Shown: in pieces, positions 13,960 through 55,500 of the stretch
Position numbering within the stretch: the first letter of the stretch is position 1
Layout of the letters: each line of letters begins with the position of its first letter
Source of the DNA: Lepidodermella squamata
Lineage: Eukaryota; Animalia; Gastrotricha
Assembly: GCA_047495785.1 (NCBI GenBank)
Contig: JBLDXI010000003.1
Location: forward strand, 3,658,001 to 3,722,000
Reading direction: 5' to 3'
Length of the DNA stretch: 64,000 nt
Made by a program: the position numbers and the translations under genes
The notes under the pieces: model-generated
The model's database searches: none
What the model was told of the DNA's origin: nothing
Seen by the model: only the letters and a program-made list of their open reading frames with translations

Positions 13960-15030
13960 ATGCAATCTAATATTGCCAATTCGATAATATTGATTCTGGC
14001 CGCGTCTGCTTTAGTTGGTGAGTTACCCTGCTCGATAGCGTGCTTCCTCGTATAAACTGTTTATCTTTCAACAGGTGCAGCTCCGGTCCAAGATGATAAA
14101 GACTGGGACGATTTCAAGAGCGAAGCCAAGTACAACAATGCCGCCGAGGAGAGCCTCCGACGTGAAATTTTCCGCAAGAACAAGGCCGAAATCGAGAGGC
14201 ACAACGCCAGGAAAGACGTCTCGTTCCAAATGGGCATCAATTCGATGGCGGACAAAACTCAGGCTGAAATCGCTAGCCAACGCCTTGGTCTGAGGGTTCC
14301 TCTTGGCGAACAGCAGCTTCTGGTCGGGGCTGCCAATCCAGTTATCGAACAGACCTTGGTTGCTGCCCTTCCGGCTTCATTGGACTTGCGAACCAAGGGC
14401 GCTGTGACCCCCGTTAAGAACCAGGGTTCGTGCGGGTCCTGCTGGGCCTTCTCCGCTACCGGAGCCCTCGAAGGCCGTTTCAAGTTGAAGTCCGGCAGCT
14501 TGGTGTCGCTTTCCGAGCAGAACCTCATGGACTGTTCTTACTCGTACGGCAACAATGCCTGCAACGGCGGTTGGATGAACTCAGCCTTCAACTACGTCAA
14601 AAGCGTCAATGGCCTTAATACAGGCGCTGCCTACCCCTACAAGGCTGTCAGCAGTACCAGCTGCAAGCTGAACAGCAGTGCAGGTGCTCTATTCGCCAAG
14701 ATCACCGGCTACACCAGTGTACAGGCCAACAACGAGACAGCTCTGATGGTCGCCCTGCAAAACGGCCCAGTTTCGGTTGCGATCGATGCTGGCAAGAGTT
14801 CGTTCAGTTACTACAAATCCGGCGTCTATTCCGAACCGCTTTGCTCGACCAGTGTCAATCATGGCGTTCTGGTCGTTGGCTACGGCACGGACTCTGTTTC
14901 CGGAAAGCCCTATTGGCTGGTCAAGAACAGCTGGGGCACGGGCTGGGGCGAGTCGGGCTACATTCGCATGGCCCGTGGCTCGAACAACTGCCAGATTCTT
15001 TCTTACCCGAGCTACCCCAACATGGCCTGA
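13960..15030 (+). CDS. CTSL: Cathepsin L-like papain-family cysteine protease (preproenzyme), 2 exons
   Basis: Signal peptide, ERFNIN-type prodomain (EESLRREIFRKNKAEIERHN), QGSCGSCWAFS, NHGVLVVGYG, YWLVKNSWG. Confidence 0.95.
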
Positions 15031-16099: not shown

Positions 16100-17237
16100 A
16101 TGGCTTATCAATTCGCGGCAATCTTAATTGTCCTTCTCGGTTTGGCAGTGATGGAAGTTGCACCGCAAAAATCTATCAAATCAATTGGCCAAAGTATGAT
16201 TTTCGTCACCAGTGATTCTTGAGTCGTAACGCGTCTTTTTCAGCTTGTGATCCATCGGGCTCTGATTGCGGGAAAAATGCGGTCTGTGACCAAGTCGAGC
16301 CGTGTAAAATGGGCCGGTGCGCGTGTATTTCGACCAGATATCGCCCAATTACAGGGTCGAACTCTACGACAGATTGCGCCCTAATCCTCGACGTCGGCGC
16401 CTCGTGCAATGACAGCGATGCCTCACTTCTGCCTCCATTTTCTTCCTGCATCAACTCCACAGTCACTTGTCAAGCAAAAGTGAGAATTTCATGCGATCAA
16501 CGATTTTTAAGGCTAATTTTTCTATTTTTTAGTCAAGCGATGGTAACTGTAAAGCAAGCAATGTTGTTGATAAATTTGGCGATAAATGCGGAAATTCGAC
16601 AACATGTGACTCTAGTCGAGGCTTGGTTTGCGGCAGTAACGGTCTCTGCGAGTGTTTACCGAACATGGCGCCTCAGAGTGACAGTTCATGCCGCACAGCC
16701 GGGTTCGCCGAGCCGTGTCTGACGCAGCAAGAATGCACGTATCCAGCTCTGGGAAATTCCCCATCGTCGTCGGCTTCAGTCTGCGACGGCGTGGGTGAAG
16801 CGTCGAAGAAGTGCTCATGTGACTGGAATAACAACTCGACGGAAAATTTTAAGACACGCGTCGTAATTTTCGGATTTCCAATCCCGTATCGGGCGAGTTT
16901 CAAACTGGCGCCACGGGGTGTCTGTCTGCGGATCCCGAGGGCGTCGAATGGGGAGTTGAGGCTGAATGACAACTGCAGTGTGCCGACTTTCGAGGCGTTC
17001 GGAGATCCGAAGAGCAAGAACCCGATGCCGGATGCCTTCTGTGATTGGGTCATGAACTTTGCATGCGTGCACTGCCCTGAAGATGGCGATGCAGATCTGT
17101 TCGCTGGGAAATGCCGTAGTCTCATACTACCGACTACACTGCAAACCCTTGACGGGCGGAAGTCGTCGTCTTCAATGTTAACAGCAGCAAAACTATACAC
17201 AGTTATTATCTCATTATTATTGATTTACTTCAGGTAG
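16100..17237 (+). CDS. Secreted/GPI-anchored cysteine-rich (EB-module-like) protein, 3 exons
   Basis: Signal peptide MAYQFAAILIVLLGLAVMEVAP, repeated C-x-C/CEC/CSC modules, hydrophobic C-terminus; introns near 16194-16242 and 16480-16532. Confidence 0.7.
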
Positions 17238-17270
17238 TTATATTTAGAGTAAATTTAACGAGTAGATGCA

Positions 17271-17430
17271 TCAGCCGATGAATACACTTCTCTTTGAATT
17301 CCTCGTTGAAAGCTTTCAGAGCCGTTATGATTTTTCGAAGCCTGTTGGCGGATACATATCAAGTCAATGGCTAGTGAATTCGTTTCTTGGCGATTTGGCT
17401 AGTGCTTCAATTTCTTTCAGGCGATTTGCG
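17271..17430 (-). pseudogene. Decayed, frameshifted duplicate of the CARD-encoding 3' end of the NPC1-like gene
   Basis: Reads KEIEALAK / ETNSLAID / RLRKIITALKAFNE in different frames and ends in TGTATTCATCGGCTGA, versus TGTATTCTTCGGCTGA at the gene's stop (17587). Confidence 0.65.
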
Positions 17431-17586
17431 CTTTGGCCAATGCTCGTAAGTTTACTGAACCATGCGGATGTTGTCCAAGACTCACTCTTCACGGAAGAGA
17501 GAAAAGAATGATCCCTTTTGTCGTCGACTTTTTCCAAAAATGCCTCTCAGTAGTATCGCTTTATTCCAGGAGCTTGGGCATTCCGG

Positions 17587-20500
17587 TCAGCCGAAGAATA
17601 CATTTGCATCGTAGAAATTTCGAGCCCTAAGAGCATCCTCGAATTCCCTGTAAAATATTGTGATTTGAAGTCATTCGATTATTTAGATAAATTGGGATAA
17701 CTGACTTGGCATCTGCCTCATTGAAAGCTTTTAGGGCCTCCATGAATTTCGGAAGCCTATCGACGTATTTGAGCAGATACAAGTCTATAAGTCCGTCAAC
17801 AGCCAGTGAATTGGTTTCCTGTATAAAAAGAGGTTTGACACGGATGATTGAACTGCTTTGGGCATTATAACCTTAGCCTCCAAATGTTGAATCTCTTGCT
17901 GATTCACGAAATTACAGCGCAGCAGCAAATTGCGAAACGTCTTAATGCCGTCTTTCAAATCCAGTGTCGTTTGCCAATACGGTCGCCATTCGTCCTGATT
18001 AATCACATCAGCGAGTATCTTCAGCTTATTCATGGTCTCCACTCTCGGCCTGGCCGACGGCGGTGGGGGCCCATCCCTAACACCTGGAGGCCTTGCAGGG
18101 TCCGGGCTTATGGGCGGGCCATCACTAGTGCTTGCAGGCGGAGAGCCAACTTCGATCTGACCGAACTGCTGCAAATCTCTAGCGAAGGTGTTGTCTACCG
18201 TGTCATCTTCAGCCAGCATAATTGCGGTTTTCCCATCCTTATTCCGACATCTCAACCATTGCTTTCTCTCTGCGTGATTTTCTTTAAAGTGCAAAGCTGC
18301 ATATTTCAAAACGATGCCGAAGCTTTCGGGATCCTTTTTCTTGATAGCCATGATTAGGGGCGTATCCCCACCACAGCAATCTAGCCCACCACCACAGAGG
18401 CAAAACTCGTCTACAGCAGCCGGCTTTTCTTCAAGAAATTTGTCTAAGCCAGTCATGTCCTTCGAAGAAATAAGCATGAAAATCTTGTGTATGTCGTCCT
18501 GTGGCAACGTCGATCCGGCATGAGTTTTGGGAGCCGCCTGAATCGTCGTTTCACTACGAGATTTCGGCGCTTCTTCCGCCGGCTTCTTAACTGCATTTTT
18601 GACTGAACTTTGCCGTTTCCAAGTCAGAGAGAAATATGTCCCGGGCAGAATGAATCCATAGATTATCGGAATGAAGAAAGTAGCTGCAAACAACAGCCTA
18701 ACATCAGATCGCACAAATAAGGTCGCAGCAGCGAAGAGGAAGTAAGCTGGCTGTAAGTTTATCGTTTAATTGTTAACAGAAAAGTAATGGATGAAAATAC
18801 TTGCTCACCAAATGCCAGAGGAAAGAGTGCTGCCGCCCCATGCCTAGCGAATGCCGGAAGGCGACACTGTATGCGAATTGAAATGTCAAAACCACGCAAA
18901 GAATAATGTGCGATGTAGTAATCTGGCTTAACGAGCTAGCGTTGAAGCGTGTTACGGAAGTAAGGATGGCAGAAAATGAGCCAAATGTTGAAATCAAAAT
19001 GAATATCGGGTAAAACACTGCTAGTAACCACGATGCTAAATATAACTTGAAGTTATTGAGGATTCACAATTGAGGATTAAGAACTAACCTCGCGAAAAAG
19101 GTCTTTGGCTCGCGATCGGGAATGCTGACATGGTAACAAGGAAGAAAATCGCCGAGGCGGTCATAAAACCATAGTAGTAGTTGTTCCATGGGAAGCTGTG
19201 CTGAAGAAGTCTTTTCGAATGAACGGTGACCATGTAAACGTCTGAGACAGCATCTGCGATCAACGCGACATCTTTTAAAGACCGGAACCTTGCTTCGGGA
19301 TCAGAAGTCGGCTTGAAATAAGCCTCGAAAGCAATGGCTATAAATTCATGTTCAAAATTGTCTTTTCAAGTCGAACATCTCACCTTCAACTTCACCGTTG
19401 TAGTAGACCAGTCTAGAGAAGCCTGGTTGAGCACTACGTGAAGCATAATAGTCGAACAAATCATCCAGAAGGGGTAATCAATCACTCACCCAAATGGACA
19501 GTGCGGGTCTGGCTTCTGCAGCAAATATTGATGAAACAGCTGCTCGAAGTCCTCTTCCGTGGGAAGGATTTCGGGGGAATAGTCCTCACGAGCTTCGGCG
19601 CATCTCTGACACGTGCGATAACGTTCGTTAGCCCAGGAGTCTCCAGGCCTACATATCGTCCCATTCAAGTATCTGGCGCAACAAGTGCGGTACCAGTCAA
19701 TGAAACCGTCGATCGAAGAAATTTCCGCGACAGCTATACTCGAGCTAGACTGCCTTGATAACACTGCAAGTCTGTTTTGAATTGAATGTGCCTGACATCC
19801 TGGTAAGCTACAGAGGCGGTCGACAGCACTCCACATCGATAGATTCCCTTTCGGCTGGACGATGAGATAAACAACTTCTCCAATAGGAGAGTTTTCGATG
19901 AGGTAACTCAGATGCTTGCTGATATTAGAGTTCTATTTAGACAGGTATTAGTGCTCAATAGAAATGATGGCTGAATGCTGATTGCTAACCTGGGGTATCA
20001 AATCCATTGGAAGGTTCGAAAATTTCTCTTGATAAGTGCTGAAACTCGCTGCGTTCATTCCCATAGGGACCAAAAGGGCGAAGATCTTGGCGCAAAGAAA
20101 TATTTTTTAGACAAAATCACTATATAAATCGCTAATACCATTAAAGCTTTGAAGAGGTAAACAGCAATTTGAGAACCAGCACTCGTGGGGGATTTCGGAA
20201 TACGATTCCTAAGTCTATCCAGAGTTGACAGAAACAAATTATCGCCACGGATGCACTGCAAACACGTTTCTTGTAGAACCTTCAGATTACCACTATATAT
20301 TGCCTCAAACCTGCGAAAAAACAGCAGTGTACCCCATGGATACAACAACTAGAGACCAGTGGCTCAGAGTCAACAGAAATGCTGCAGCAACACATGTCAT
20401 AGCAGTATATGGGGCGTTGAAAAGCCAAGCTCCTAAACAATTTGATAAAATTGAGGAGCTTTGAGATTTATAAATACCTGGCACTAGAAATCCGATTTGT

Positions 20501-23257
20501 AGACACCTTATCAAACCGATCTTGACGTTAACGTACTGCGTAACGGCCTTCTCTAACTGAAAAAGAAAAACTGTATTCACAGTGACGAACAGAAATGTCT
20601 CGCCCTCGCCTCTTTAATTGGTGATTGCGCCAGTTGTCTTGCGGAGTAAACAACTGTAGAATCGTACTCCTGTCGAAAATATTCAGCTTTGATATTACCA
20701 TTAGACTGTCAATTATTACTGGATGTAGTTTATCGGCCTGTCCCAAGTGGAGAAGGGCATGATGAATTTCTATCATCAACATGAAGAATTCAAGCAGTTG
20801 ATTCCGATGTGGTAGAGCTAAGGCCAAGACCAGGATTTCACAGAGAGGAAGCACCAAGAGTCCGAGTACCAGACCAAGAATACCAAGCTCCGAAATGCGG
20901 CGATCTCTTATACGAATATTCGAAGCCTCAAGTTCTCTCGCCTGTCGACGTTGTCGTTTCGCTTCCTTCCACGATTGGAGAGAGGCAAAGAACGTCGGAG
21001 TCGAGCGAATTGCGACAACAAGGATTAAGCATATTATCAAAATTGCATTAAAAATGATCCCTCGTGGCCTCTCCTGCAACTCCTTATCAATATCCCGATG
21101 AAGCAGCGCCTTAATTAAGACACAGTGTTAACGATATCATTCAATGCAGATTGAAACGTACATCTGTATACCATGATTGAACGTAAGAAAATCGTTTGTT
21201 CATTTTTGCTGTTTCAAAGGTGTATTCCTTCCTGATTTCAGCATCAATAGATAAGGATAACTCATAGTAAGACGTATCACTCTCTCGCTCCTCAATCGCA
21301 AAACTAATGATTAGGCTTTGAAAGGTAGGATAATCGGTGCCTGAAAAATAGAATTAGGAGTATGAATGGCTCAATTGGAAGAGATTAACCTTTGAACCCG
21401 GCTACCACATGCCACGGATAAGTGACTTCTCCCGATCCTTTCCCAATGCAAGAAATATCTATTGGTATCCTAAAAGTTGAAATTATTCAAAAAATGTTAA
21501 TGAAATTTCAAAAGAAGATACGTGGTGCATTTAGCCATGTGGGAAACATCGTCATCAATAAAATCGACATCCTGGCTTTGCAAATAATTGAAATAGCTAT
21601 TGACAAGGCATTCGCTGTCAGCCGCCTTGTAACACATGCTCCTGATTGAAAGTTTCCCGCGGCGAAAGTCAAGGATTGCTCGCTGCAAATCTGCAACCTG
21701 CTTTCACATCGTTAGAAAATTGAAAAATGGCAAAATGATCGAACCTCAGCGAAAAAGTCGAGCTTTGAGCTGCTTGTGAGCTGTTTCATGGGGTTCACTA
21801 AAATTGTTACGTCACGATAAACCTTGCCATTCCTATAAAAAGATACAGACATAAGTTCCTGAGATTTTGGATAGTTTCTTACCGAAACAGCCGATTGAAG
21901 CGGGCCTCGTTTCCGGTTGGAAGGAACATGTTAGCTGCAGTTTCAGGGAGGAATTGATGCTTACTGGTGAAGTAGTAGACGATTGATAAAGTGAAGGCTA
22001 GCACGCTGATTATGAAGGATATTATGACAAAGAATCGATTTTTGAATTGGCTGTTTGCAAATGTCGAGAAGGCATGAGGACCACAATGATTAGCTGTGAA
22101 ATCTGATCTTGTGCTTGGCGATTGAAGCGATTGAGGCAACATGACTTCAAGCACTTCGTCCTCATTCGCAACATATTGTTGAGCATTGACTGTCGACTTC
22201 CGTGTCGTGAGGCAACAACAGCAACAACCACACCAGTTCAGAATCATGAGACCAAAAAGGACAGCCACGGAGATAGCAATGGCCCCCACTGAAAGGATGA
22301 AGATTCTATCCCATTTCTTAACCGAAGAAGGGTCACGACTTTTTAGAGGCGAAAAGCACTCTTCAGAGTTCAGGCAGTTGATACAGGAGGAGGGAAATCC
22401 TTGCCTGCGGTAGAATTTTCCAGGTTCATTACACGATCTTGCTGGCCTTGAATAGCCAGTGAACGAATTGTCATTCTTCAGCTCTTTTGGAAATGGGCCC
22501 TTGTAGCTGATTTTAAAAGTCATCGCCAGCTCATCGAGATCTTCATCTTTTTTAACTTCCAATGATCGGAAAAAATCTGAAGGCCCACATTTTCCACCTT
22601 CGCAAACAAGGTCCAGAACTGTTCGATTACTAGCCGGGAAGAAAGTATCGCTACAACTTTCGTATAGAGTTTTGGCATATTCAGGCTTCAAATAAATGAT
22701 TGCTTCCGTGACAAATGCCAGATTTTCAGCAGGGCTATGAAACAGGCCCGAATTCGGAATGGAGATGAAAGCGGATTGATTTGGGCTGCAGGCACTGTCG
22801 CAGAATAACTGCATAAGATTCTCCGAACAGGTCGGGGAAGCGTGGTATAACTCGAGAATCCTCTCGAAATACGTCATTGATAGGTAAATCAAGAATCCAT
22901 GGGGACAGCAAAGTTTACCGAGTGTTTGACTTTTACCTATTTAAGCATAAGAAACTTGAAAGTTAAAGTAATTGTGCGAGTTGAATTACCTAAAAGATGC
23001 GGGCAATATCGTCTAGCGACCATTGCAATATTCTCATCCCGACCTTTGGTTGAATTTCCAAGTGCGTTCTTTGATTTTTCCAGAACCATTACTCCATCAG
23101 ATGATTTATCCTCGTACGGATGAATCGGAGAAAAGATGCAGTAACTCCCGGCAAATCGCAAATGGGCAGCCACGGTCTGAAATGAACCCTTGAAATTTGA
23201 ACCTTAACAAATGTATTAATTATTTACCAGGAATAATATCGTCCAGCTTGGTTTCAT
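17587..23257 (-). CDS. Divergent NPC1 (Niemann-Pick C1/Patched family) protein with C-terminal ankyrin repeats and a CARD-like domain, multi-exon
   Basis: Signal MKPSWTILFL; NPC1 N-domain CSENLMQLFCDSACSPNQSAFI; middle loop CLVNSYFNYLQ; SSD-like TMs; Cys-rich loop IDGFIDWYRTCC..QKPDPHCPFG. The final TMs continue in the same ORF into GDTPLIMAI / NKDGKTAIMLA ankyrins and a CARD-like domain. Not every internal junction was verified. Confidence 0.8.
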
Positions 23258-23458
23258 AATTCAGCTTCCTTTGAGAGTGGTCATGAAACAGTGTGGAGTT
23301 CGATCGGGATTGAAAACATTCATCTTAAAAAGGCAATTAGTGCATTTTCCGACTGGTCTGCATTTTTATTGAGTTTTGACATTGGGCCAGTGCTAGACTA
23401 GATAAAAAGCCGCTATTAAAGATAAAACAGAAGCTAATGGTGTCCATTATAATCAAAA

Positions 23459-24640
23459 CTACAGTTTCTTTTCGCGAGATAACGGCGTGAATAAGCAGAA
23501 AAAGTGAAAGCGCTGCACGCACATTTTAGCTCTTCTCGCTAGTGTTTGTCTGATACCGCCACTGCCAAAGCCGAATGCGTCATCTCCTATCGTCTTACAC
23601 TGCGGGTCTTTACCACAGACGTGTCGTTTGATTTGATCTGAGAGCAGTTCAATGTTGGATTTTTGAAATCCACCTGATTGAAACTCTTCAATAAACATCT
23701 CCAGCAAAACAGTATCCCAGGTCGAAAGTGTCAATTGAACAGGGTAATAAGCGTCCAAATAGGAAAACCAGTTGGTCGGATTTTGATAAATCAACTGCTC
23801 AGTTGTCGTGTTGATACCCGGGATAAACGGGTAAAAGTCTTTACCAACATCTTTAATCACGCGAGTTGCATCTGGAAAGCAGCCAGGAGAGGTCTCTTCA
23901 TTAGAGTTCAATGTTGGGTAGTTCCCAGATTTTTGCATAGCAATCATCCTCTCTCTTGTGAAAAGAGTAACGTTCGCAAACTGGATACCAAACTTAGCCT
24001 CCTTAACAAAATGAGTGCCATAGTCTTTGACAAAGCCTTCAAATAGCTTCCGAGAGGTGTCATTATCCTTCTGATGCGGCTGGCTGAACAGGCGGTAAAC
24101 TGATCTGGAGAAATCTAGCCGCAAATGAGCTCGCTTGAAGATATTCAGCATTTTAACGCTGATTGATCGATTATGGCAGATGATATGGTTCAGATGTAAG
24201 CGTGTTTCCTGATTGAAAGAATTGTTGTATGTGCTGTACAATGAACTTCTAGAAAACGCGGTGTAGGGATTGCCAATTTCATCCGAATCGCTGTTATCCC
24301 TCAACGGATGCTCAATAGAGTAAGCCCAAGCCTTGTCATTTTCTCGAAAAATCAATTCCTTCGCGAAGCTGTTCATATCATTGTACCACTTGTTGAGCAA
24401 ACATCGGCAGTAGTTAGGGCCAGGCGCATACTCGATATCGAATAGATTGTCGTACTTCCCTGTATCTGAAGCATTTTTGACTGTTTCGAGATTGAAGGTA
24501 GGTTTGAAACTCTGCGACTCCAATGGGAAGTTTGACATGATATCATAGCCGCGACCGATGGCGTCGTAACTTTCGACGATTTCTTGAAAAATCGTACATT
24601 TCACCGTAGTAATCAACAAAGCGTAAAACAGGATTATCAT
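23459..24640 (-). CDS. Secreted MACPF-domain protein (MACPF only), intronless
   Basis: Signal peptide; IGRGYDIM; FVKDYGTHFVKEAKFG matches the MACPF signature. Confidence 0.85.
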   Translation of the reverse strand: MIILFYALLITTVKCTIFQEIVESYDAIGRGYDIMSNFPLESQSFKPTFNLETVKNASDTGKYDNLFDIEYAPGPNYCRCLLNKWYNDMNSFAKELIFRENDKAWAYSIEHPLRDNSDSDEIGNPYTAFSRSSLYSTYNNSFNQETRLHLNHIICHNRSISVKMLNIFKRAHLRLDFSRSVYRLFSQPHQKDNDTSRKLFEGFVKDYGTHFVKEAKFGIQFANVTLFTRERMIAMQKSGNYPTLNSNEETSPGCFPDATRVIKDVGKDFYPFIPGINTTTEQLIYQNPTNWFSYLDAYYPVQLTLSTWDTVLLEMFIEEFQSGGFQKSNIELLSDQIKRHVCGKDPQCKTIGDDAFGFGSGGIRQTLARRAKMCVQRFHFFCLFTPLSREKKL

Positions 24641-24709
24641 TGAATGGTTTTATTTAAAAAATGTAATGACTGGAAGCGAGATTAGTTTAGATTAATAAAA
24701 AATGACTTT

Positions 24710-26539
24710 TCAAGTTCTGATGCAGAGGTACTGAGCTGCGAATGCGTACGATTTTGAATAACCAACGTAGCCAATTTGCATTCGTTGGTAGCCGGGAGGG
24801 CATTCCAATGATCCAGTAATTTCATTCGCTTGCTCAATTTCCGCACACTGGGGGCTTGTTTTGCAACTGACAAGATTTTTGCCCGGATTACCAGCCATTT
24901 TTTGATAACCACTGTTGATTGGAGCACCTTTAATGTTTCTCTCGTTGAGGCATATTACAAACTGCCAAGAGAAGAACTTCCCGTAGACGTAGTCTCTGAA
25001 ATTTCTTGGACAGCTCCTAGTCTTCCTCGGGCTCAGTGGGTTTGACGAATGACTTAGCTCGCCAATGGCACCGAGCTTGTTAGACATGCATTCTTCGGTT
25101 TCAACTGTAGAGCTGTAGTCGGCAAGTTCCCAATCATGGTCATCACTTTCGCAGCTCTTGACTCGAACATCCCTGTTCTCACGAATGAACATTCCACCGA
25201 AGTGAGTTTCCTCCTTCGCATCCCGATTGCTTAGTATGCATACTTTGTGGGTCACTGTGCACGTTTTTGATTCATCATTGGCAACAGTCCAAGTTACAGA
25301 TCCAAAGGTCGTTGGATTGTAGCCAAGATTGCAAGCTGGCCTGCCCGAGGAATGGAGAGGGTTCGAAATGTTGCTAACCTCCTTGCATGTGCTGATCTGA
25401 AATGCTCCTCCGAAGGTTGGCTGCTCGTTCTTTTTCATCGGCTCATCGGCTACCTTCCCACACATGGCAGGCGCTTTAGGGTAGAGAACTAGCTCACAAT
25501 AGTCTTCCAAGTAGCTTTCAAGGGTGGTCTTGCGATCGGCGACAGAATCTGCATCTGAGTCAGGAAACAAGTCTTGCGACATCAAACTTGTTATTGGTTT
25601 CATCGTCAGGGATAAGGCAGCGGGTGATTTCTTAGTGGCCTCCAGCCAATCCGAAACTTGGTTTGACGGAGGTTTCGGCCCAAGGGAGAAGTAATCAGCT
25701 TTGTTACCGAAAATAGTTCTGTTTTTCGCAATAACAGCTTTTGCCAGAACTTCTGGATCGATATTGCCGATTTTCGCGAATTCCTTGGGAGTGTAGACAA
25801 CTCGGAGGCCGAAAATGCTTCCAAGCTTGACATCCGTTACAACATGCGTCCCAAATTTGTCGAGGAACGGTTGGAAAGTTTGTTTCAGCTCGCTTCGTAG
25901 TGGCATAACGGTAGGCAGAGCCATTACGGCGGTATTAAAGGTTTTCGTGACTGGTGGGTTGTTGCTAGCTTTCACTGATGAACAGAATGAGGTCTGGCAG
26001 GTGAAATAGACGATCAACATCTTCCTTCCATGCAAAAACTGAGCTTGAATAGCATCGAGGTTGGTTTTCTGGGCTTCTCCATTGTACTTGAATGACGCTT
26101 CATTCACGTATGGATCGTGGATTTCCAGCCTTTGATCGAGGAACTTCTTGTAATCTGAATAGGAATCCAGGACTTTAACCGATGGTGTGAACGAGCATCT
26201 TTCAGAGCAATAAATGGGCTGTAGATACTCGCTTGTGACAGATCGGCCATGAAGTTGCCAGTATAGGCGCATGGCGAAACTCGACTGGCGTAGCCCGGGA
26301 TCAGTGCCATCGATCGAGAAGGGATTCGACTCAGCCAGGTTGTAGCCAGCTCCGAGATAGACCTTGTAGGCTTCAATTTTCGGGTCTGTAGGTAGTTTCG
26401 GGACTTGTAAACAAAGTCCCATCGGAGTTTTGAAGTGGCGGCATAGTTGGCTCGCAGCTTCTATTGTTTTCGCATCTTCCTCCAATTTCGCCGCATTGGC
26501 GAACGCGATTAAAAACGGCGCAAATATCAAGGAAATCAT
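24710..26539 (-). CDS. MPEG1/Perforin-2-like MACPF protein lacking the TM anchor, intronless
   Basis: Signal peptide; YLGAGYNLAESNP..DPG; FLDKFGTHVVTDVKLG; P2-type repeats FGGAFQ..NPL..CNLGY, FGGMF..NPL..SCPRNF and NEITGSLECPPGY; no C-terminal TM. Confidence 0.85.
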   Translation of the reverse strand: MISLIFAPFLIAFANAAKLEEDAKTIEAASQLCRHFKTPMGLCLQVPKLPTDPKIEAYKVYLGAGYNLAESNPFSIDGTDPGLRQSSFAMRLYWQLHGRSVTSEYLQPIYCSERCSFTPSVKVLDSYSDYKKFLDQRLEIHDPYVNEASFKYNGEAQKTNLDAIQAQFLHGRKMLIVYFTCQTSFCSSVKASNNPPVTKTFNTAVMALPTVMPLRSELKQTFQPFLDKFGTHVVTDVKLGSIFGLRVVYTPKEFAKIGNIDPEVLAKAVIAKNRTIFGNKADYFSLGPKPPSNQVSDWLEATKKSPAALSLTMKPITSLMSQDLFPDSDADSVADRKTTLESYLEDYCELVLYPKAPAMCGKVADEPMKKNEQPTFGGAFQISTCKEVSNISNPLHSSGRPACNLGYNPTTFGSVTWTVANDESKTCTVTHKVCILSNRDAKEETHFGGMFIRENRDVRVKSCESDDHDWELADYSSTVETEECMSNKLGAIGELSHSSNPLSPRKTRSCPRNFRDYVYGKFFSWQFVICLNERNIKGAPINSGYQKMAGNPGKNLVSCKTSPQCAEIEQANEITGSLECPPGYQRMQIGYVGYSKSYAFAAQYLCIRT

Positions 26540-26633
26540 TTTAGTAAAAATTCTAGGGAAAGAAGATTAGAGAACAAATAATTTATTTATCGAATGAGAT
26601 CGCGGGTCTTATAAAAATAATTCTGAAAGAGAT

Positions 26634-27236
26634 TCACACATCTGGTAAAGGCTTCTGAGGAAGAAGCCGAGTTGAAGATGGTGAATCTGGTAACTTTGGT
26701 TTAAAGCATAGCATTTTCTTCATTTTGAAAATATAGACCACGCTGAATATTGTTACAATACAAAAAGCTGTCAGGCAAATAGCCATTATTAGAGTAACCA
26801 TGCCAATTCCTGAGTCTGGTTGCTTGATCGCTGCTTGCATTTGAATCACAGCCTCAGTTACTGGAATAGCTTCGACAGTTGATGTTACTCGAGGCTTAGT
26901 TGATGAAGTTGTGATTTGAGCAGTCGAAGGAGGAACTGTCACTTTTGTGGACATTTTTGTGGTAGGATTACTATTGCAAAGGTCATCGAAGCAGCAATCA
27001 GCATTCAGGCAATCTTGAGCGGACGCGCAACTCCTCATGTTGAGATGGCCGTATTCCAAAATTGCACAGGCGTGGTCATTTGAATCCGACTCGCACGTCA
27101 TGATTTGAAAATTCTCTTGATTCTGGCACGTCACTTTGTCATCGATGGAATTCGGCAGGCACGAATAGCATTTGAGAACATCGCCTGATGACAGGCTGAC
27201 CATAGTGGTTAAGAATGTTAGCAATAATTTCGTCAT
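26634..27236 (-). CDS. Ly6/uPAR (three-finger, CD59-like) domain type I membrane protein with mucin stalk
   Basis: Signal peptide, LKCYSC...CCFDDLCN with 10 Cys, Ser/Thr stalk, TM, short Pro-rich tail. Confidence 0.88.
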   Translation of the reverse strand: MTKLLLTFLTTMVSLSSGDVLKCYSCLPNSIDDKVTCQNQENFQIMTCESDSNDHACAILEYGHLNMRSCASAQDCLNADCCFDDLCNSNPTTKMSTKVTVPPSTAQITTSSTKPRVTSTVEAIPVTEAVIQMQAAIKQPDSGIGMVTLIMAICLTAFCIVTIFSVVYIFKMKKMLCFKPKLPDSPSSTRLLPQKPLPDV

Positions 27237-27789
27237 GTTTGCAGAATGAAAAAGGGCATAATAAAAATTGCTACCTCAATCGCTTTGTTTGCACGGTCAT
27301 TTTTTCATGTAAAAAACAATAATAACTCGCGAGATATCAGGAGGAGATATTTTATATCGTTCGCTCGCACTCGGCATATAGTATTTCTCTGTTACTGGGA
27401 ACGAAGCGAGGTCTAAATGCACTGTTTACGTTGGCCAGCTACGCCTAAAGCTGGATACTGAGCTGGACCAGATAATGCACTCAGAGTTCTAAACTTGGAG
27501 AAGAACCATCGCGTTTAAATTTAGCCCAAATTTCCTGCGAAGGCACAATAAATGAACTCACGCCGGTAAATGCGATGCGGTTTCGATTTCCATTATACGG
27601 TCTCGACAAGTTCGGAAATCGATTTTCAATGGAAATGAATCGTCTGCATTGATTAGATAAAATTCCCACCCTTATCTTTACGTCGCGCAATTCCTCTGAA
27701 AAAAACATGGTTCTACGCCTCACTGAGGGCATTTAATCATTCATAAAACCACCTTTTACACAGCTAGGTTGTATTGTCTGATTCGCAGG
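27237..27789. promoter_or_regulatory. Probable bidirectional promoter between the Ly6 gene (-) and the NEK-ankyrin gene (+)
   Basis: Head-to-head start codons ~550 bp apart; positional inference only. Confidence 0.4.
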
Positions 27790-29958
27790 ATGCTGAGGTC
27801 GAGTGCCGACTACAAGATCATTAAGAAAATCACGCAAGGGGGATTCGCCGATGTGTACCTAGTAAACCTTAAGGCGCACGGGGATCAGGAGTTTGTCCTG
27901 AAGCAAGTTTCTATTTCGACCATTGAACAAAACGGCGGCCAGAAAAGTGTGGCATTGACACTTGAAGAGGTAAAGATGCTCTTACGGTCCAGCAGTACTT
28001 GTTAACAAACCTTTGCAGGCAAATTTAATGGCAAAACTGCAGCATCCGCATATTGTTCGCGTTGTCGGGGCTTTCATAGGTTAGTTCGGCTTCTACTCAT
28101 TATTCAAACATGGACCAATACCTTTTCCTTACAGAAGGGGACTACTTTCGATTCGTCATGGAGTACTGTGAGAAAGGTTTGTTTCTTCTTATTGAAATTC
28201 GACGTGTGATCAATCGAGGGCAAATATTCAGGGGATTTGCAAACGTACATTTACAATCGAAAGGGCACTAAGATACCAGAGCAACAAATCCGAGAATGGT
28301 CTTTACAACTAGTTTTAGTATTGAAGTATCTTCACGACCATAACGTTCTGCACCGGGATGTTAAATGCAGGGTACGTTTGGCTGAATTCTTCGAAAAATC
28401 GATTTACGAAAATGCCAATAACAGAATGTGTTTCTTACATCGAATGTTCGGTTTATCAAACTCGGTGACTTTGGAATTGCAAAGCAGCTTGACAGGTTGT
28501 AAATCTGAATTTTGGATTTTTTGAATTACGAAGGCTTCAAATCATTTAGACCCGATCAAGAGGCGACAACGTTAATTGGCACTCCGGCTTATTACGCTCC
28601 AGAATTTTGTGAGAAGCAAATCTACACGTCAAAGTCCGAAGCATGGTCTTTGGGAATTCTGATTTTCAATTTAGCCATGCTGAAAGCTCCGGTGAGTTAC
28701 CGGTATTATTCATAATATTTCAGGATTGAAATTTTTTAATAGTTTGCATATGACGGGAATCTGGTTGGACTGTTCGCAAGCATAACTCAGTAAGTTCGTA
28801 AAAATTAGTTCAGAATGACAATTCAGGTTTTCCTTTGAAGATCTGCCCCGCCTCAAATCACAGCCGAATACTCCAGCGAACTGCGCGATTTTGTCGACAA
28901 GTTATTGCTGAAAAATCCGAAAGATCGCATGTCGATATCTGAATCTTTGACCCATCAATTTCTGATTTACGCAATTACGGAGGCCTGTGATGAAGCGATT
29001 GGCTCGCATCCTAATGCAGCCATCAAGAGAGCGAGCGAGCATGCATACATCAGTTCTCCAATGGTCCTGAAACCGTTGGTAACCGCTCGACAACTCAGCC
29101 CTAATTCTACCGTGAGACCATTTCCAGCCATTTTCCTTCCAAAATCCAGCTTGATTCCCTTTTCAGAGACCTGTCGACATTTTTAATGCTGTTCTAACGT
29201 CTCGAAGTCTGACTCTTCTCCGCGAGTTGATTTCAAACGGAAACAAGCAGATGATTTTGAATGCAAGAGACAAAAATGGCGACACGGTCCTGCATGTAGC
29301 ATCTCGTTATGGCAAAATAGACGTCATTAACATGCTGATAGTCGACGATCGTCAATGCATCACCCCGGAATGGTTGAATCAGAAAAACGAAAACAACGAC
29401 GGGGCAATCCATATTGCCACGGTTCGAAGTGACATCGAAATCGTCAAGAAAATAGTTCGAGCTGGTGGGAATTTGAACCTGCTCGGGGGGTTAGGCGATA
29501 ATAATGAAACTCTGAGCAGAAAGCTGAACCAGCGATTCGCGCCAGAATCCTTCAAGAACATCGAATTCACCCCACTCCACTTGGCGGTTTTGTACAACCA
29601 TGCAGCTACCACTCAGTACTTGGTGACTCACTTGAAAGCCGATGTAAACGCACTTGATAGCAATGGAAATCTTCCGATACATATCGCTTCTCTACTTGGT
29701 CATCTGGATATTGTCAAGTTATTCGTCACGCAATGCCGCCAGTCGGTGAATGTCCGCGGCCAGGATAAATTGACGCCGTTGGATTTTGCGCAGAATAATG
29801 GTCATACGGCGCTGAGTGATTTCCTACGCAAAAATGGCGGCATGTGTGCGCAAGAACTGAATGCGCTCTCACAGTCGAGCCCGCCCGTTTTCAACGCCCC
29901 GGTTCGCTCTTCCGAAGGTTTCGGAAGCGAGCTGAAGATTTCAACGTCTGTTCAATAG
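27790..29958 (+). CDS. NEK (NIMA-related)-like Ser/Thr kinase fused to C-terminal ankyrin repeats, ~8 exons
   Basis: QGGFADVYLV, VLKQV, LQHPHIV, VMEYCEKG|DL, HRDVKCR|NVFL, KLGDFGIAK, GTPAYYAPE; a phase-0 intron (29112-29166) joins in frame to GDTVLHVA / TPLHLA / LPIHIA / TPLDFA ankyrins. Confidence 0.88.
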
Positions 29959-30180
29959 CTTGGTGTCTTATATATTGCTAAATATACTGCCTAATTTGTA
30001 TGCTTTTCTCGTCTTTCTGATGCGCGTTTTCTTTTTTCTTGTTTTCGATATTTTGTGCTACTACCTCTTTCAGCTTCACATCAATCATGATGCGTAAAAA
30101 TTCAGCTATAAACGCTTGCAGCTTTATTAAATTCTGACTGGGATACACGAGTATTCTCGATTTTATTGTTTTAATTTGCT

Positions 30181-31118
30181 TCAAGCGTCAGCAAAGTCTT
30201 GACGGCATGCTCTGCGAAAAAATAATAAAATTTATTTGACTAACAAATTTGAGCTTTGAAACTAACTCAGCAATTTCTGGCTGATAGTCGTCAAGGGCTT
30301 GCAAAAACGCCTCCCATTTCTTTTGATCTCGAACAACATATGTGTCCAGAAGCTCGTCCACGGCAAGAGAATTAGTTGCCTTCAAGGAATGCATGAAAAA
30401 CGTCTAAATTCGACCAAATTGAATCTTACTTTGGCATCGATTGTAGCTATTTCAGTGCTCTTAAAGATTTCGAAGGCTAAAAGCTTAGTACGGAATAGAC
30501 GATCGCCATCGTGGAGTTGTAATTCAGTGTGAAACGTTTCGCGCCACTTGTTCAGCACCTTTTCACGCTTTTTTCTCATCGCCAGCATTTGCCTAGGATC
30601 CATTGCTTTCGGCTTGCTATCGGGCACAGGTTGGGGATTTGCAGGCTCCTTTGGTTTTCTGATAATGTGATCGTTTAAAGGACCTAAATTTAAATTTGGA
30701 ATTCATTTCACCTGTTTGGCTCATTCTCAACTTTGGGAGCTTCTCGTTTAGGTTTAAATTTTTCTAACAGGATTTTAGCTGCTTCTGAATCTTCCTTTGA
30801 CGGGTACTCGCCCTCCTTAGGATGGGCAATAGCCTCCAGTTCAGCTAGAATCGCGTCGACAATTGAGTCCAGCCGAATTTCTCTAGCTGCTTGAACATAA
30901 GCCTCGAGGTCTCGCTCCAGATTAAAATTGAGAATTTCACAAAATTTAGCAACGCCCTTGCGCTTGTTAGTGTCGTATTCGCTCTCGATTTCTTCGACGT
31001 ACTCGAAGTGTATTCTCGTCGCATCTTTCGAGTTTATCTGCCGCACCCATGCTGGAGCGTCGAAAGTCTTCACTTTCAGCATGTTTACAACTCGAATTAG
31101 ACCAAAAGGGGACGACAT
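30181..31118 (-). CDS. Bipartite death-fold adaptor: N-terminal death-domain-like, C-terminal CARD-like, 4 exons
   Basis: N-term helical domain (AWVRQI..EEIESEY..LEAYVQAAREIRLDSIVDAI), Pro/Lys linker, then KWRETF..EIATIDAK|ATNSLAVDELLDTYV..FLQALDDYQPEIAE|ACRQDFADA*. Confidence 0.7.
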
Positions 31119-31184: not shown

Positions 31185-32297
31185 CTATCTTTTAATGACT
31201 CCCGATACCTCTTGTAAAAGATAAGGGAGAAGCAGAAGCAGCCATATTTTGTACGATAGGCGAGGCCTAAATGCACCATTGCAGTCGTAAGCTGTAGCAG
31301 TTATCATGAAATTGAACGGCTGCTGATAAGCATTCGCTCGCTGGCAGGCAGTCACCTCGACAGTGACAGCGTTGCTAGGTGAAAGTATATTGAAGGGACA
31401 TGAAGGTGGGCTGCCTCGAGAAGCTTCAGCCTATATGAAAAAAGTCATAGAGACATACGCTACCCATAGATGCATTTAGGACTTACAATTATGCCAATTC
31501 CCTCATTTCTCAGGAGATTGAAATCGCCGATTCTAATCCTGCATTCAGTCGGCCACTGACCGCACTCGCTGCTGAAGATGGATAGGTTAACTGCAGCGCC
31601 TTCCGGGGCGGCAATAACGAAACTGCAAGTGTCTATGAAATCCGGGAGATTGGCAGGCTGATTTCCGGATCCGCCTTAAAAGAGCATTTTTCAATCAACT
31701 GAAAGATGAAAGATGAGAGGCCATACCTAGAATCGTATATCGCTCATTTAAATCTATCCCATAAATCGTCGAAGTTGGTCTGTTACAGTGTTGACCGGAA
31801 TTCGTGTCAACTAAACATAAATAGGGTTAAATTTGAAAAATTATTAGGCTAATCTTACTTATGTGTTCAGTTATTTGCGCCCCTTCCCGCTCATAGCTGT
31901 TTGACATCGAGACTGGACGACTGCTCGCCGGTAGTCGATATAGGAATGGATAGGAATACATAGGAAGCGGCACTATTAGAGGCCTGACTCTGTAAGGACT
32001 TGATAGGATTATAGGCCTTGAATTGCCGGTGTAATAAGTCGGCCCAGTTCGTATCACACTACTTCCGGTGATGATTGGCGGAGATTGGTACGACGGAGGC
32101 CTGTAGACTGGTTGACTAGCTGGTTGAGGCCTAGGTTGGGGCCGCATATTACTCGAACTAACGAAGGGCGCGCTTGGTCTGCTGAACACCGGCCTTGAGG
32201 CACTGGAACCACCCCCAACTCGCGAGGCTCCAAACGTAACTTTTGCATTGATACCAGCGACGGAAATGAGCGGTAATAAGATTAGTAAAATCGGCAT
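31185..32297 (-). CDS. Secreted/GPI-anchored protein with Pro/Ser/Arg-rich N-term and a CUB-like domain
   Basis: Signal peptide; spliced exons give DTCSFVIAAPEGAAVNLSI...SPSNAVTVEV...FMITATA; hydrophobic C-terminus WLLLLLPYLL. Confidence 0.65.
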
Positions 32298-33531: not shown

Positions 33532-34849
33532 ATGTCTATGAAATTAATTCATAGTATCAGTCGAAGAGGGATAAGCTTCCTCTCAAGCGAGGCAAAAGAG
33601 TTCCTGAAGCGAGAAGTTGCGAAATTCGACCCTAGCATTCCAGTTCAAAAAGCGAAAACTCCCCCTGGATCATGGTACACAACCCCCGAATTTTACTATC
33701 TAGACCAACAGGCAATTATCCGGCCTAATTACTGCGCTGTAGAATCTCAACATTTAGTCGCGGAGAAGAACAGCTACGTCACGTCTTCATTCGCCGACGA
33801 GCAGTACCTTTTCACAAGGCCCGAGGCTGAGTCTGACGTGAAAGGCTTTTTCAACATTTGCCGGCACCACGGCGTTATCCTGGAATGGGGTGCTTGCGGC
33901 AAGAAGTCAGCCTTCGAATGTCCCTATCATGCTTGGACGTTCGACAACAAAGGAAATTTGATTAAAACAACAAAAATGCGAGGCATCGAATGCTTCCAGG
34001 CGAAAAGCTTCGGCCTTAACCCTGTCAGTGTTTTTACAGGGCGGTGGCCGATAATCTTCGCGAAACCAGGCGCTCATTTTACAACACCTGGCTCGTCCGA
34101 GGATAACATGAAGACGCTTTTCGAGCAATCTAGACAGTGTGAGAAGGAGTTGTTCTTCAAACAGGAACACATAACCTCGCCGCAGAATTACATCCATGTC
34201 AAGCGGAAGGTCTACCATGTTAAATGTAATTGGAAGATTTACATCGACAACTTCCTGGATGATAGCTACCACTTTCCTTACGTTCACAAAGCTACCCAGG
34301 CTAAAATCTGCGATCTCCCAACTTATCAGTAAGACTTAATTCGCTGATGGAAATAATGTGAAAATTATTAATGGTAATTTTTTCAGCACTATTATTCATA
34401 AGACATCGGAAAAAGCTGGCAATCACTACCTGTTCTCGGTCCAGTCTTGCAGCTACAAGCACAACAAAGCGGCTTCAGTTAAATTTTTTCACATCTATCC
34501 GAATGTAATGCTCCAGGTTTACAACGAAAAGCCTTGGTTGGATGTTTACTACATCATTCCCACGGGTCCGGAGACGATGACCCTCATCAGTGATTGGTTT
34601 GGGAAACGTGACTTTTTACAATCCGTGTCGAAAGAGGAGGCCGATAAGGCGATTCAGGCGAATTTCGAGTATGAAGACCAGGCTCAACGGGAGGATGTTG
34701 AAGTTTCAGAGATGCAGCAGATGGGCTTCAGAAGCAGTGGCGTACCCTTCGGTCGGTACGTGCCATCTGTCGAGGCTGGTATGTATTCATTTCACCAACG
34801 GCTCGTCTCCGAATACGCTGCATTCCTAAATTCGGAGCATAAAAACTGA
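33532..34849 (+). CDS. Choline monooxygenase-like Rieske non-heme iron oxygenase, copy 1, 2 exons (intron 34329-34386)
   Basis: TPPGSWY, NICRHHG...CPYHAW Rieske motif, NWKIYIDNFLDDSYHFPYVH, QREDVEVSEMQQMG, GRY; basic transit-like N-terminus. Confidence 0.9.
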
Positions 34850-52500: not shown

Positions 52501-55500
52501 TTGATGCAAATTCATACAAGTTAATTTTAATTTAATTTATTTTTTTTTTAATTTAAAATTTCAATATGACTTATGATTTTATTCAATTTTAATTTTAATT
52601 TTCAATTTTCAATTTTCATAAATTCAATTTAATTTTTCCCATTTTTTCAGAATTGAAGCTCATGACGAAAATTCGTTGTATCAATGGTCGGTTCAAACAT
52701 CAGGCGGAAGTGATAAAAATGGGCCGGAAAATCGAATCGGAAAAGGAGCCGGATATTTTCATTTATTTCCGAATGTTATGTACAACTTTTACGGCCCATG
52801 GCTTGATTTGAACTACGTCCTGCCAACCGGGCCCGAAAGCTGTCAAGTGCTATTCGACTGGTTTGCCGATCGCGAATTTCTCGCACGACTCGACGCGCCA
52901 ACGCGCAAAAATACAATCGCGCAAAATCTGGCGGATAGCGATAAAGTGCAACAGGAGGACGTTGAGTTGTGCGAACGCGTTCAGGAGGGCAATCGGTGCT
53001 CGTCTTTCCAGGCGGGCAGATACGCGCCCCGCGTCGAGACACTCATGCACGCGTTTCACAAACGCCTTGCGGCAGAATACGCAAAACACATTGATAAACT
53101 CGCTTGAACAAAATCGCGTTGATTTTTATAATAAAAATGATCGAATGGAAGCAGGAGGAAGAATGCATAAATGCATAAATTACAGGGTTCCAGCACTAAA
53201 ATTGAAGCTCCAGCACAAGACCTTCCCAGACTATGTTTTTTCGATTTGAAATTTTTTAACCGAATATTACGCCCAATTTGCGATAATAGTGGTCAAGTTA
53301 AGAGTTATGCTTCAGACTACAGAGCCGATATCGATTTTGCAAATCAGTGATTTTTCCGATATCAGAAGTTTTTGTAGCCAAAATTGAAAGCATGTCCAAC
53401 TAGCTGATGAAACCAGGTAGGCAAAATAAAAATGGTCCTAATACCTTTCGCTGAACAAAATTTCATCCATTTTATTTGCAAAAAATGTCTTTTCAAATTT
53501 TTGAGAATTTGATGATTCATCATAAATCGAACAAAATTAGTGAAAAATTCCGCGGGTTTTTCTTTTTGAGTACAAGGCTTAATTGTGATTGAAAAAAATT
53601 ATCCGAAAATTTCACTTAAATATTACAGTCAAATTTTGAAATTTGGTTCAGATAAAGTGGATAAAAATTCCAAGACCGAGTATGGCATCAAATCGATTCA
53701 AGAAAAATCGCAAAATAATCGCAAACATTCAGTGCCAGGGTGCCTAAATTTAGCGCTGGAACCTCAGTTTTAGCGATGAAACTATTTATAACAATTTTTT
53801 TTATTAAGGAGGACTTACACAATGTGTTTGATTTCAGCTTCAAGGTGACTCGGAGCGGCGATTGGTTCGAAAAGCTCGCCCAATTCGTTGCCGTGGTCGT
53901 AGAAACTAGGCGCGGCGTTCGACGACAGGCCAGCGCATGTGACAACGCTCGACCGGCCAGGTACGCAGGCGAGTGATCGGCGCAGACTTTCGCCGAAATT
54001 GCGCGCGGGCGACACGTAGCTTGTGTGTTCAGTCAGGCGGTGTTGCGCCGAGTGGCCGCCGCCTCGCGCGTGGGCCGAGGCGCCGGGCAGGTGCGGCGCG
54101 GCCTGGGAGCGGCCGCGCCAGAAGCAGTCCTGGCAAAAGTTGACGCCGTCGCCGCCGCCGAGCGACGCCGGGCAGTCCTGGCAGTGGTAGCGCAGGCCTG
54201 AAAACGATTCGCGACCACAACCAGCACATCGGACGGGGTGAATAGCTTGAAGAAAGAAATCAATTTAAAATCGCGAAAATTCAGAGAAAAACTCGGGACT
54301 AACTGTGTTCAGCAGCAGCAATACGATGCATAACCGGCAGCCATAAGAAAGGGCCAGGAGCAGCTTGAGACTGAAGGCGGGATACAAATTCGTTAGCAGT
54401 TGCACCATGTCCGTCCGAGCCAGGCTGAAAAAATTATAAAAAATTAGTAATGAAAAAATCAATTAAAATTGTCCACATTGTTTGGAAAATCTGGCCTAAA
54501 AATTGATTTTTTTCTAATTAGAATCCTCATTAAAAACAAAATTATGGTCACTAAAAATTCCGGATTTTGACCTAATTTTCTCTGACTGAAATTCCCAGAA
54601 TTTATTTGGCGCCAAGTTTTTTTGAAATCAATTCGGAAGAAGACATTTTCCCAACGTCTAAACCCAGCTCTAGCTATAATTAAAAAATATTGCTCGGCAT
54701 TATAATATTGCTTTTAATTATAGTCCTAATATTGAGTTGGAGGTCAACGGCTAATTTATGAAAAAAGTAGAAAATTGCCGGTGGCCAATAAAAAAGTATG
54801 TAATAGCGAGTGGTAATAATCGATGAATGACCTTATAAGGCGGGCATTTTCGGAACATTTCCGGCACCGACATGATTTTTTCCGGCGGGTTGTTCGAAAA
54901 GTTAGCATTATTCAAATTGCTGCTACTCGTGCTACACTGATGATGGCTCGGCGCCGAACACGGCATAGCATGAACCTGGCCGTTTTTCTGATAGTTAGCA
55001 CCACTAAACGTGTACGACCTGTGGACACTGGCCGAATTTTGAGGTAGGCAAAAATCGTTAGATTGATATTGCTCGCAGTTATTGTTAAGGCTGCGATCTG
55101 AACAGTAAGGACACGACGAGGAGAATGACTGGGACGAGCACGAAGCCGCCGCGTTATCGGCGACCTGCGTCGACGTCGATGACGCATCATCGTCATCCGA
55201 GGCTACTTTCGGCGGCCAAGTGGCGGCCGAGTGGTAATAGGCCGGCGTCCAGTTATCGTGACTGAAATACGACGCCATTAAGGAGGCGTCATTTTTTCGG
55301 AGTAGTTGAATAAAAAATTCCAACTTTTTTCGAATTATAAAATGAGAAATAAAGCCGTTTCTTATTAGCACTTGAACAAATATAATATTATATTGAGTAA
55401 ATCTTGGCGTGTTATTTGACTTAGAGATGGCGCTGAAATTGATCGGGCGATAATGCGCATTGCATACATAGAAAAAAATTAAGTGAAGCTATATATTATA

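Follow-up and report, generated by a model that had tools for sequence, protein, structure and literature searches.

This report concerns a window of 64,000 nt of the genome of the gastrotrich Lepidodermella squamata (GenBank assembly GCA_047495785.1, contig JBLDXI010000003.1, positions 3,658,001 to 3,722,000 of the forward strand; coordinates below count from the first letter of the window) and two genes therein, which encode proteins ending in related CARD-type domains. One is a divergent NPC1-like gene, the other a small gene with a predicted product consisting of a helical domain, a linker and a CARD. Both are located on the minus strand, 12.6 kb apart. The genome is compact within the window, with introns of 49-58 nt and a G+C content of about 42%. 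A first-pass annotation, made from the letters of the window, had proposed that both proteins carry one and the same CARD with two identical intron positions, that the NPC1 gene acquired it by genomic duplication from the neighboring gene or the reverse, and that the two products are homotypic partners, the small one being an adaptor with a death domain (DD). The peptides quoted there for the two CARDs are indeed encoded on the minus strand.

The C-terminal stretches of about 95 residues of the NPC1-like protein (encoded at 17587-18045) and the small protein are 38% identical in a MAFFT alignment, and blastp aligned the two CARDs with 63.9 bits (E 2e-16). The alignment includes a gapless core of 77 residues with 29 identities, for which a Smith-Waterman score of 139 was obtained, compared with 28.4 +/- 5.1 (maximum 54) for 2000 shuffled sequences (z 21.6). 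The pairwise alignment bears out the claimed relationship, and a hidden Markov model (HMM) built from the two domains matched the segment encoded by exon 2 of the tail CARD (Table 1). Moreover, each copy has a phase-0 intron directly before the motif xTNSLAVD, then an exon of 113 nt and then a phase-2 intron. Since the middle exon has the same length in both genes, both intron positions and both phases coincide in the gapless alignment, exactly as proposed. Measured against the Pfam CARD consensus, the phase-0 intron interrupts the loop that connects helix 3 to helix 4, and the phase-2 intron is at about helix 6. Two exact coincidences by chance were estimated at about 1e-5, given approximately 290 positions per intron, a value which becomes less extreme if there are few proto-splice sites. 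In both genes the CARD cassette forms the 3' end of the gene, and the motif DFADA in the last exon of the small gene resembles EFEDA in the last exon of the tail. According to blastp, the two proteins are unrelated apart from the CARD and a proline-rich stretch preceding it. Because two intron positions and their phases are shared, the gene structures support the duplication of one three-exon cassette as DNA rather than retroposition or convergence.

The tail CARD is transcribed and spliced as the end of the NPC1-like protein. Contigs of two sequencing runs were compared with the NPC1-like locus only: X1, which is RNA-like as judged by its contigs, which skip introns kept in the other run, and X2, which is a DNA run. 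Both introns of the tail CARD were found as joints in RNA-like contigs and in none of the DNA run, so that the junctions predicted in the first-pass annotation hold on the side of the tail. The intron at 18751..18808 (joint 18750->18809), likewise a joint in X1 and not in X2, ties the tail exon to the NPC1-like exon preceding it. Altogether eight introns of the NPC1-like gene were seen as joints in X1 contigs, 49-58 nt in length and with GT..AG borders, with one GC..AG intron, which is located at 20557-20609 on the minus strand. Many joints between opposite strands also occur in run X1 and look like assembly artefacts. The coordinates of all features are listed in Table 1.

Table 1. Features of the two CARD genes and their surroundings in the window
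Feature	Position	Strand	Basis or remark
Divergent NPC1-like gene, ~19 exons, ~1578 aa	17587..23257	-	approximate exon-chaining model, middle exons predicted
Large exon: last membrane helix, ~220-aa linker and first ~58 CARD residues (helices 1-3)	17872..18750	-	open frame, uninterrupted
Tail CARD intron 1	17819..17871	-	53 nt, GT..AG, phase 0, between EIQHLEAK and ETNSLAVD; joint in two RNA-like contigs, none in the DNA run
Tail CARD exon 2 (ETNSLAVD...EADA plus 2 nt), helices 4-5	17706..17818	-	113 nt; two-domain HMM E 1e-16 on frame segment
Tail CARD intron 2	17648..17705	-	58 nt, GT..AG, phase 2, splits AA/G; joint in RNA-like contig, none in the DNA run
Last coding exon of the tail (..EFEDALRARNFYDANVFFG, stop)	17587..17647	-	sequence
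Small gene, predicted protein of 259 aa	30181-31118	-	predicted splice model
Predicted first exon: 135 aa, all-helical orphan domain and start of Lys/Pro-rich linker	30712..31118	-	open reading frame, in-frame stop just 5' of ATG
Predicted intron joining first exon to linker/CARD exon	30659..30711	-	53 nt, phase 2, GT..AG, frame kept, length within RNA-confirmed range
Linker and CARD helices 1-3 (..WRETFHTELQLHDG..EIATIDAK)	30430..30658	-	Pfam CARD match covers this exon and the next
Predicted CARD intron 1 of small gene	30380..30429	-	50 nt, GT..AG, phase 0, before ATNSLAVD
CARD exon 2 of small gene (starts ATNSLAVD)	30267..30379	-	113 nt; alone matches Pfam CARD, E 0.015, profile positions 44-78
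Predicted CARD intron 2 of small gene	30212..30266	-	55 nt, GT..AG, phase 2, splits GA/A
Last coding exon of small gene (..ACRQDFADA, stop)	30181..30211	-	sequence
Decayed partial third CARD copy	17230..17416	-	~170-350 nt past the stop codon of the NPC1-like gene; tblastn, frames
Two MACPF genes, weak CD59-like gene with membrane anchor, protein kinase followed by ankyrin repeats	23459-27236 and 27769-29958	- and +	between the CARD genes

The domain of the small protein is firmly classified as a CARD by its sequence: it matches PF00619 with 29.2 bits (cut-off 23.9, E 9.1e-7) over profile positions 2-81 of 85. With a profile of both domains the top match among PDB sequences was the CARD of cIAP1 (E 0.06). 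For the tail domain a single-sequence AF2 model was obtained with pLDDT 70 and seven helical segments, the first two of which are short. When this model was compared with 48,161 chains by VIA-align, at least 24 of the top 30 matches were CARD entries; the matched CARDs include those of NOD1, caspase-1, CARD9, MAVS, CED-3/4, ARC, NLRC4 and Apaf-1/caspase-9, and the match to NOD1 reached Z 6.0 with a root-mean-square deviation (rmsd) of 4.8 A over 84 residues. Helical content does not explain the enrichment of CARDs, because a control model of the N-terminal part of the small protein gave no death-fold match. The proposal of one CARD in both proteins thus holds directly for the small protein, which passes the Pfam cut-off, and by transitivity for the tail, which fails in Pfam when searched alone and appears to be CARD-type by its homology to the small-protein CARD together with a medium-confidence fold. 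The isoelectric points of the two domains, 5.2 and 5.4, are mildly acidic and uninformative on binding.

If the similarity were convergent or compositional, the tail domain would be a generic helical segment and no CARD. The missing Pfam match of the tail and its modest structural Z values point in this direction, but the score lies far outside the shuffled range, the identical TNSLAVD is spelt in different codons, the middle exons agree in length as do the introns in position and phase, and CARD entries dominate the structural matches of the tail, unlike those of the control. We consider such an origin of the similarity extremely improbable.

The duplication is old. Within the gapless core the nucleotide identity is 46% and the identity at third positions 26%, which equals the random level. 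The same codon is used at only 8 of the 29 identical residues, even the TNSLAVD motif is written with differing codons, and no alignment of the introns of the two copies was possible. Saturated third positions, differing codons and unalignable introns argue for an old duplication, for the absence of recent gene conversion and for a motif held by selection. Of the proposed acquisition from the neighbor, the genomic duplication stands, given the shared introns, whereas copying directly between the two neighbors is not supported, given the old and saturated split. The capture of a duplicated 3'-terminal cassette fits the data, and either gene could be the donor. As a weak hint from the sequences, the small-protein copy is nearer to the family consensus, which would make the tail copy the more derived one. 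The tail CARD is constrained within the species. Two strongly diverged haplotypes were found at 17500-17930, with depths of 71 and 41 in X2, which together approximate the flank depth of 110, and both are also represented in X1. They differ at 9 of 53 intron sites, compared with 10 of 348 coding sites of the tail CARD (six synonymous, three conservative replacements).

Downstream of the NPC1-like gene a decayed partial third copy of the CARD was detected. It is exon-2-like, with deletions of 7 and 10 nt, and reads ETNSLAID.. and, after a frameshift, ..ALKAFNE. Its local DNA score is 75, compared with a maximum of 36 for shuffled sequences, and the two-domain HMM matched it with E 0.067. In addition, 17 of 19 positions agree with the end of the NPC1-like coding sequence, a match which none of 500 shuffles reached. 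Alignments with the spliced tail and with the genomic tail scored equally (122 and 124.5, respectively), so that the copy may have been made with or without introns. Further intact copies were not found in the 64-kb window by tblastn or by the two-domain HMM in six frames; a 'TNSLAV' at 54378 and a CARD-like stretch at 14790, both from tblastn, were attributed to chance after their frames had been read. A search of 1.84 billion representative proteins gave no genuine relative of the tail CARD; this library evidently lacks the proteins of the genome studied here and is therefore silent on its paralogues. The sole match there, a tandem-repeat protein of 576 aa, was judged spurious.

These observations bear on the possibility that both CARDs are members of a larger family which is specific to the lineage and scattered in the genome. 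In that case the introns would be family-wide, the two genes would be neighbors by accident or as a relic, and other proteins would be the true partners of their products. The age of the split with its saturated third positions is compatible with such a family, as are the five unrelated genes which separate the two CARD genes, and the decayed copy implies that the cassette was copied more than once. On the other hand, the window holds no other intact copies and no public protein resembles the tail CARD. The two CARDs match each other with 64 bits, compared with 29 bits for the small-protein domain against the general CARD profile, and their genes share one strand at a short distance. A scattered family is possible, and in our view the most serious alternative, yet less probable than a pair of paralogous CARDs with the small protein as candidate partner of the tail.

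The structure of the small gene is predicted. If intron 1 of its CARD is read through, the frame reaches a stop at 30382. The splice prediction is supported by canonical sites, typical intron lengths, this stop and a Pfam match which continues unbroken over the first CARD junction. Still, the splicing of 30181-31118 was predicted from sequence alone and the upstream open reading frame (ORF) has a stop of its own at 30708-30710, as would be expected if the model were wrong, that is, if this ORF of 136 aa were a separate gene and the CARD part either a CARD-only gene of 105 aa starting from the ATG at 30603 or a pseudogene that is not expressed. Against a wrong model, the two parts are joined in frame by an intron of 53 nt with GT..AG borders, well within the usual length of the eight introns confirmed by RNA; merely about 100 nt lie between the stop of the ORF and the next ATG; and none of the three CARD exons is damaged, their splice sites are canonical and the domain that they encode is significant in Pfam. 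An erroneous model is regarded as improbable. Upstream of the small gene a further ORF of 156 aa (31827-32297, minus strand) was noticed; its product starts like a signal peptide, has a body rich in proline and matched no Pfam family.

The first-pass annotation had assigned a DD to the small protein, and this was not upheld. Its 135 N-terminal residues gave no match in Pfam, among PDB sequences, in a word search or in the atlas. The AF2 model of this part is poor (pLDDT 54), and with this low-confidence model neither Foldseek nor VIA-align listed a death-fold structure among the top 50 matches; VIA-align returned generic helical repeats only. As modeled, the N-terminus is an orphan helical domain, which may be a very divergent death fold. 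The protein as a whole is probably soluble.

The name NPC1 is appropriate with a qualification. The N-terminal domain is clearly recognized by Pfam (PF16414, NPC1_N; E 6.9e-26, 91.8 bits), and a weak match to the middle luminal domain (NPC1_MLD, E 0.011) is contained in one exon of 59 aa. By hydropathy, the hydrophobic segments follow the order known from NPC1, and a cysteine-rich C-terminal luminal loop is present. Searched exon by exon in Pfam, no piece of the gene matched the Patched or sterol-sensing profiles, for which reason the product is, by its sequence, designated as divergent NPC1-like and not as typical NPC1. The product is predicted to start with a signal peptide, followed by the NPC1 N-terminal domain; about 13 hydrophobic segments then lead to a cytosolic tail which ends in the CARD. 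The C-terminus of human NPC1 is cytosolic, and by analogy the NPC1-style arrangement of segments predicts the same location for the CARD-bearing tail. Between the last membrane helix and the CARD, the linker in exon 18750..17872 includes a weak ankyrin-like stretch (Ank_2, E 0.068) and has a proline-rich end. A gene for a protein with a Rieske [2Fe-2S] domain and a ring-hydroxylating oxygenase alpha subunit (33532-34849, plus strand; Pfam E 2e-12 and 2e-17, respectively) is located a few kb from the NPC1-like gene.

Five genes unrelated to the CARD genes lie between them, including two MACPF genes, the CD59-like gene and the kinase-ankyrin gene. No CARD-like exon was found upstream of the latter. 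These surroundings make a reading in terms of immunity or cell death attractive, and they prove nothing.

Taken together, we favor, with modest confidence, the view that the two domains are paralogous CARDs which descend from one ancestral three-exon cassette by an old genomic duplication, and that, of the candidates at hand for docking on the NPC1-like tail, the small protein is the best. The ancestral cassette would have been duplicated long ago as genomic DNA, one copy coming to end the cytosolic tail of an NPC1-like multi-pass protein and the other to end a small protein. By analogy with other CARD proteins, the tail CARD may recruit a CARD partner through homotypic assembly, with the linked small protein as candidate. 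Once docked, the small protein could either relay a signal through its N-terminal domain or damp it. The small protein was chosen as candidate for two reasons: CARDs act through homotypic assembly with other CARDs, and in known systems linked CARDs that are closely related bind each other.

Several points weigh against this view. As the duplication is old, the adjacency of the two genes may be incidental, and the introns of the small gene are predictions. The tail domain searched alone matched no Pfam family at E<=10 and Foldseek gave no match for its model at E<=0.001, while the VIA-align matches do not exceed Z 6.0, at an rmsd of 4-5 A, in a range that is common for helical bundles. The CARD-CARD partnership itself is a reasonable guess by analogy.

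A bolder version appears doubtful. In this version an endolysosomal NPC1-like sensor signals directly via its cytosolic CARD, to a dedicated partner which is encoded 12.6 kb away amid a cluster of MACPF, CD59-like and kinase-ankyrin genes. If true, it would represent an undescribed wiring of a transporter-type membrane protein into death-fold signaling in immunity or cell death. The usual bearers of CARDs are soluble sensors, adaptors and caspases, and no NPC1-CARD fusion was found described in our searches of the literature. The main value of the favored pairing of tail and small protein is a testable partner for an unusual protein that is NPC1-like and carries a CARD: an NPC1-type tail CARD and a related CARD protein nearby constitute a receptor/partner hypothesis which can be tested cheaply, in an animal lineage that is little studied. 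Should the pair not interact, the two would merely be old paralogous domains which are neighbors by happenstance. The shared introns show in addition how such architectures may arise, namely by duplication of a 3'-terminal exon cassette and its capture as genomic DNA.

Among known systems, caspase-1 comes closest: there, too, the CARD of a larger protein is related through genomic duplication to small CARD proteins whose genes lie close by. The CARD-only proteins COP/CARD16, INCA/CARD17 and ICEBERG/CARD18 are encoded beside CASP1, arose by duplication and bind the CARD of CASP1 (PMC3775265). The copies of that system are young and highly similar, whereas those described here are old and 38% identical. 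The small protein here has an extra N-terminal domain of 135 aa, the large protein is NPC1-like and not a caspase, and binding of the partner is putative. The comparison raises the question whether the small protein could be a decoy which caps or competes at the tail CARD, in analogy to COP, INCA and ICEBERG at caspase-1, rather than an adaptor which passes a signal on. Its CARD is located at the extreme C-terminus, its other domain has no recognizable signaling fold, and linked duplicated CARDs are decoys in primates (PMC3775265); yet the predicted protein retains a structured N-terminal domain, unlike the CARD-only decoys, and its identity to the tail CARD is low compared with the 53-97% reported for COPs (PMC3775265). 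A decoy is accordingly unlikely, less so than an error in the gene model. RAIDD/CRADD, which consists of a CARD and a death domain, offers another comparison. Like this protein, the one described here is small, presumably soluble and composed of a CARD and a second helical domain, and is proposed to bridge receptor and effector; its second domain, however, is not detectably a DD, and the order is reversed, with the CARD at the C-terminus.

In the pairs NOD1/2-RIPK2, RIG-I/MDA5-MAVS, CARD9/11-BCL10 and Apaf-1-caspase-9 the CARD of a sensor nucleates the CARD of a partner, and the best structural matches of the tail model come from these families. Their sensors are soluble proteins of the NLR, helicase or coiled-coil type, in contrast to the multi-pass NPC1-like membrane protein presented here, and we know of none among them that is a multi-pass membrane protein of the NPC1/Patched type. 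The partners in these pairs are not usually genomic neighbors. With NPC1 and NPC1L1, finally, the NPC1-like protein shares the NPC1 N-terminal domain, a trace of the middle luminal domain, the cysteine-rich loop, the arrangement of segments and a C-terminus predicted to be cytosolic. It differs from them by its highly divergent membrane core and by its C-terminal end, where about 320 residues, ending in the CARD, take the place of the short cytosolic tail.

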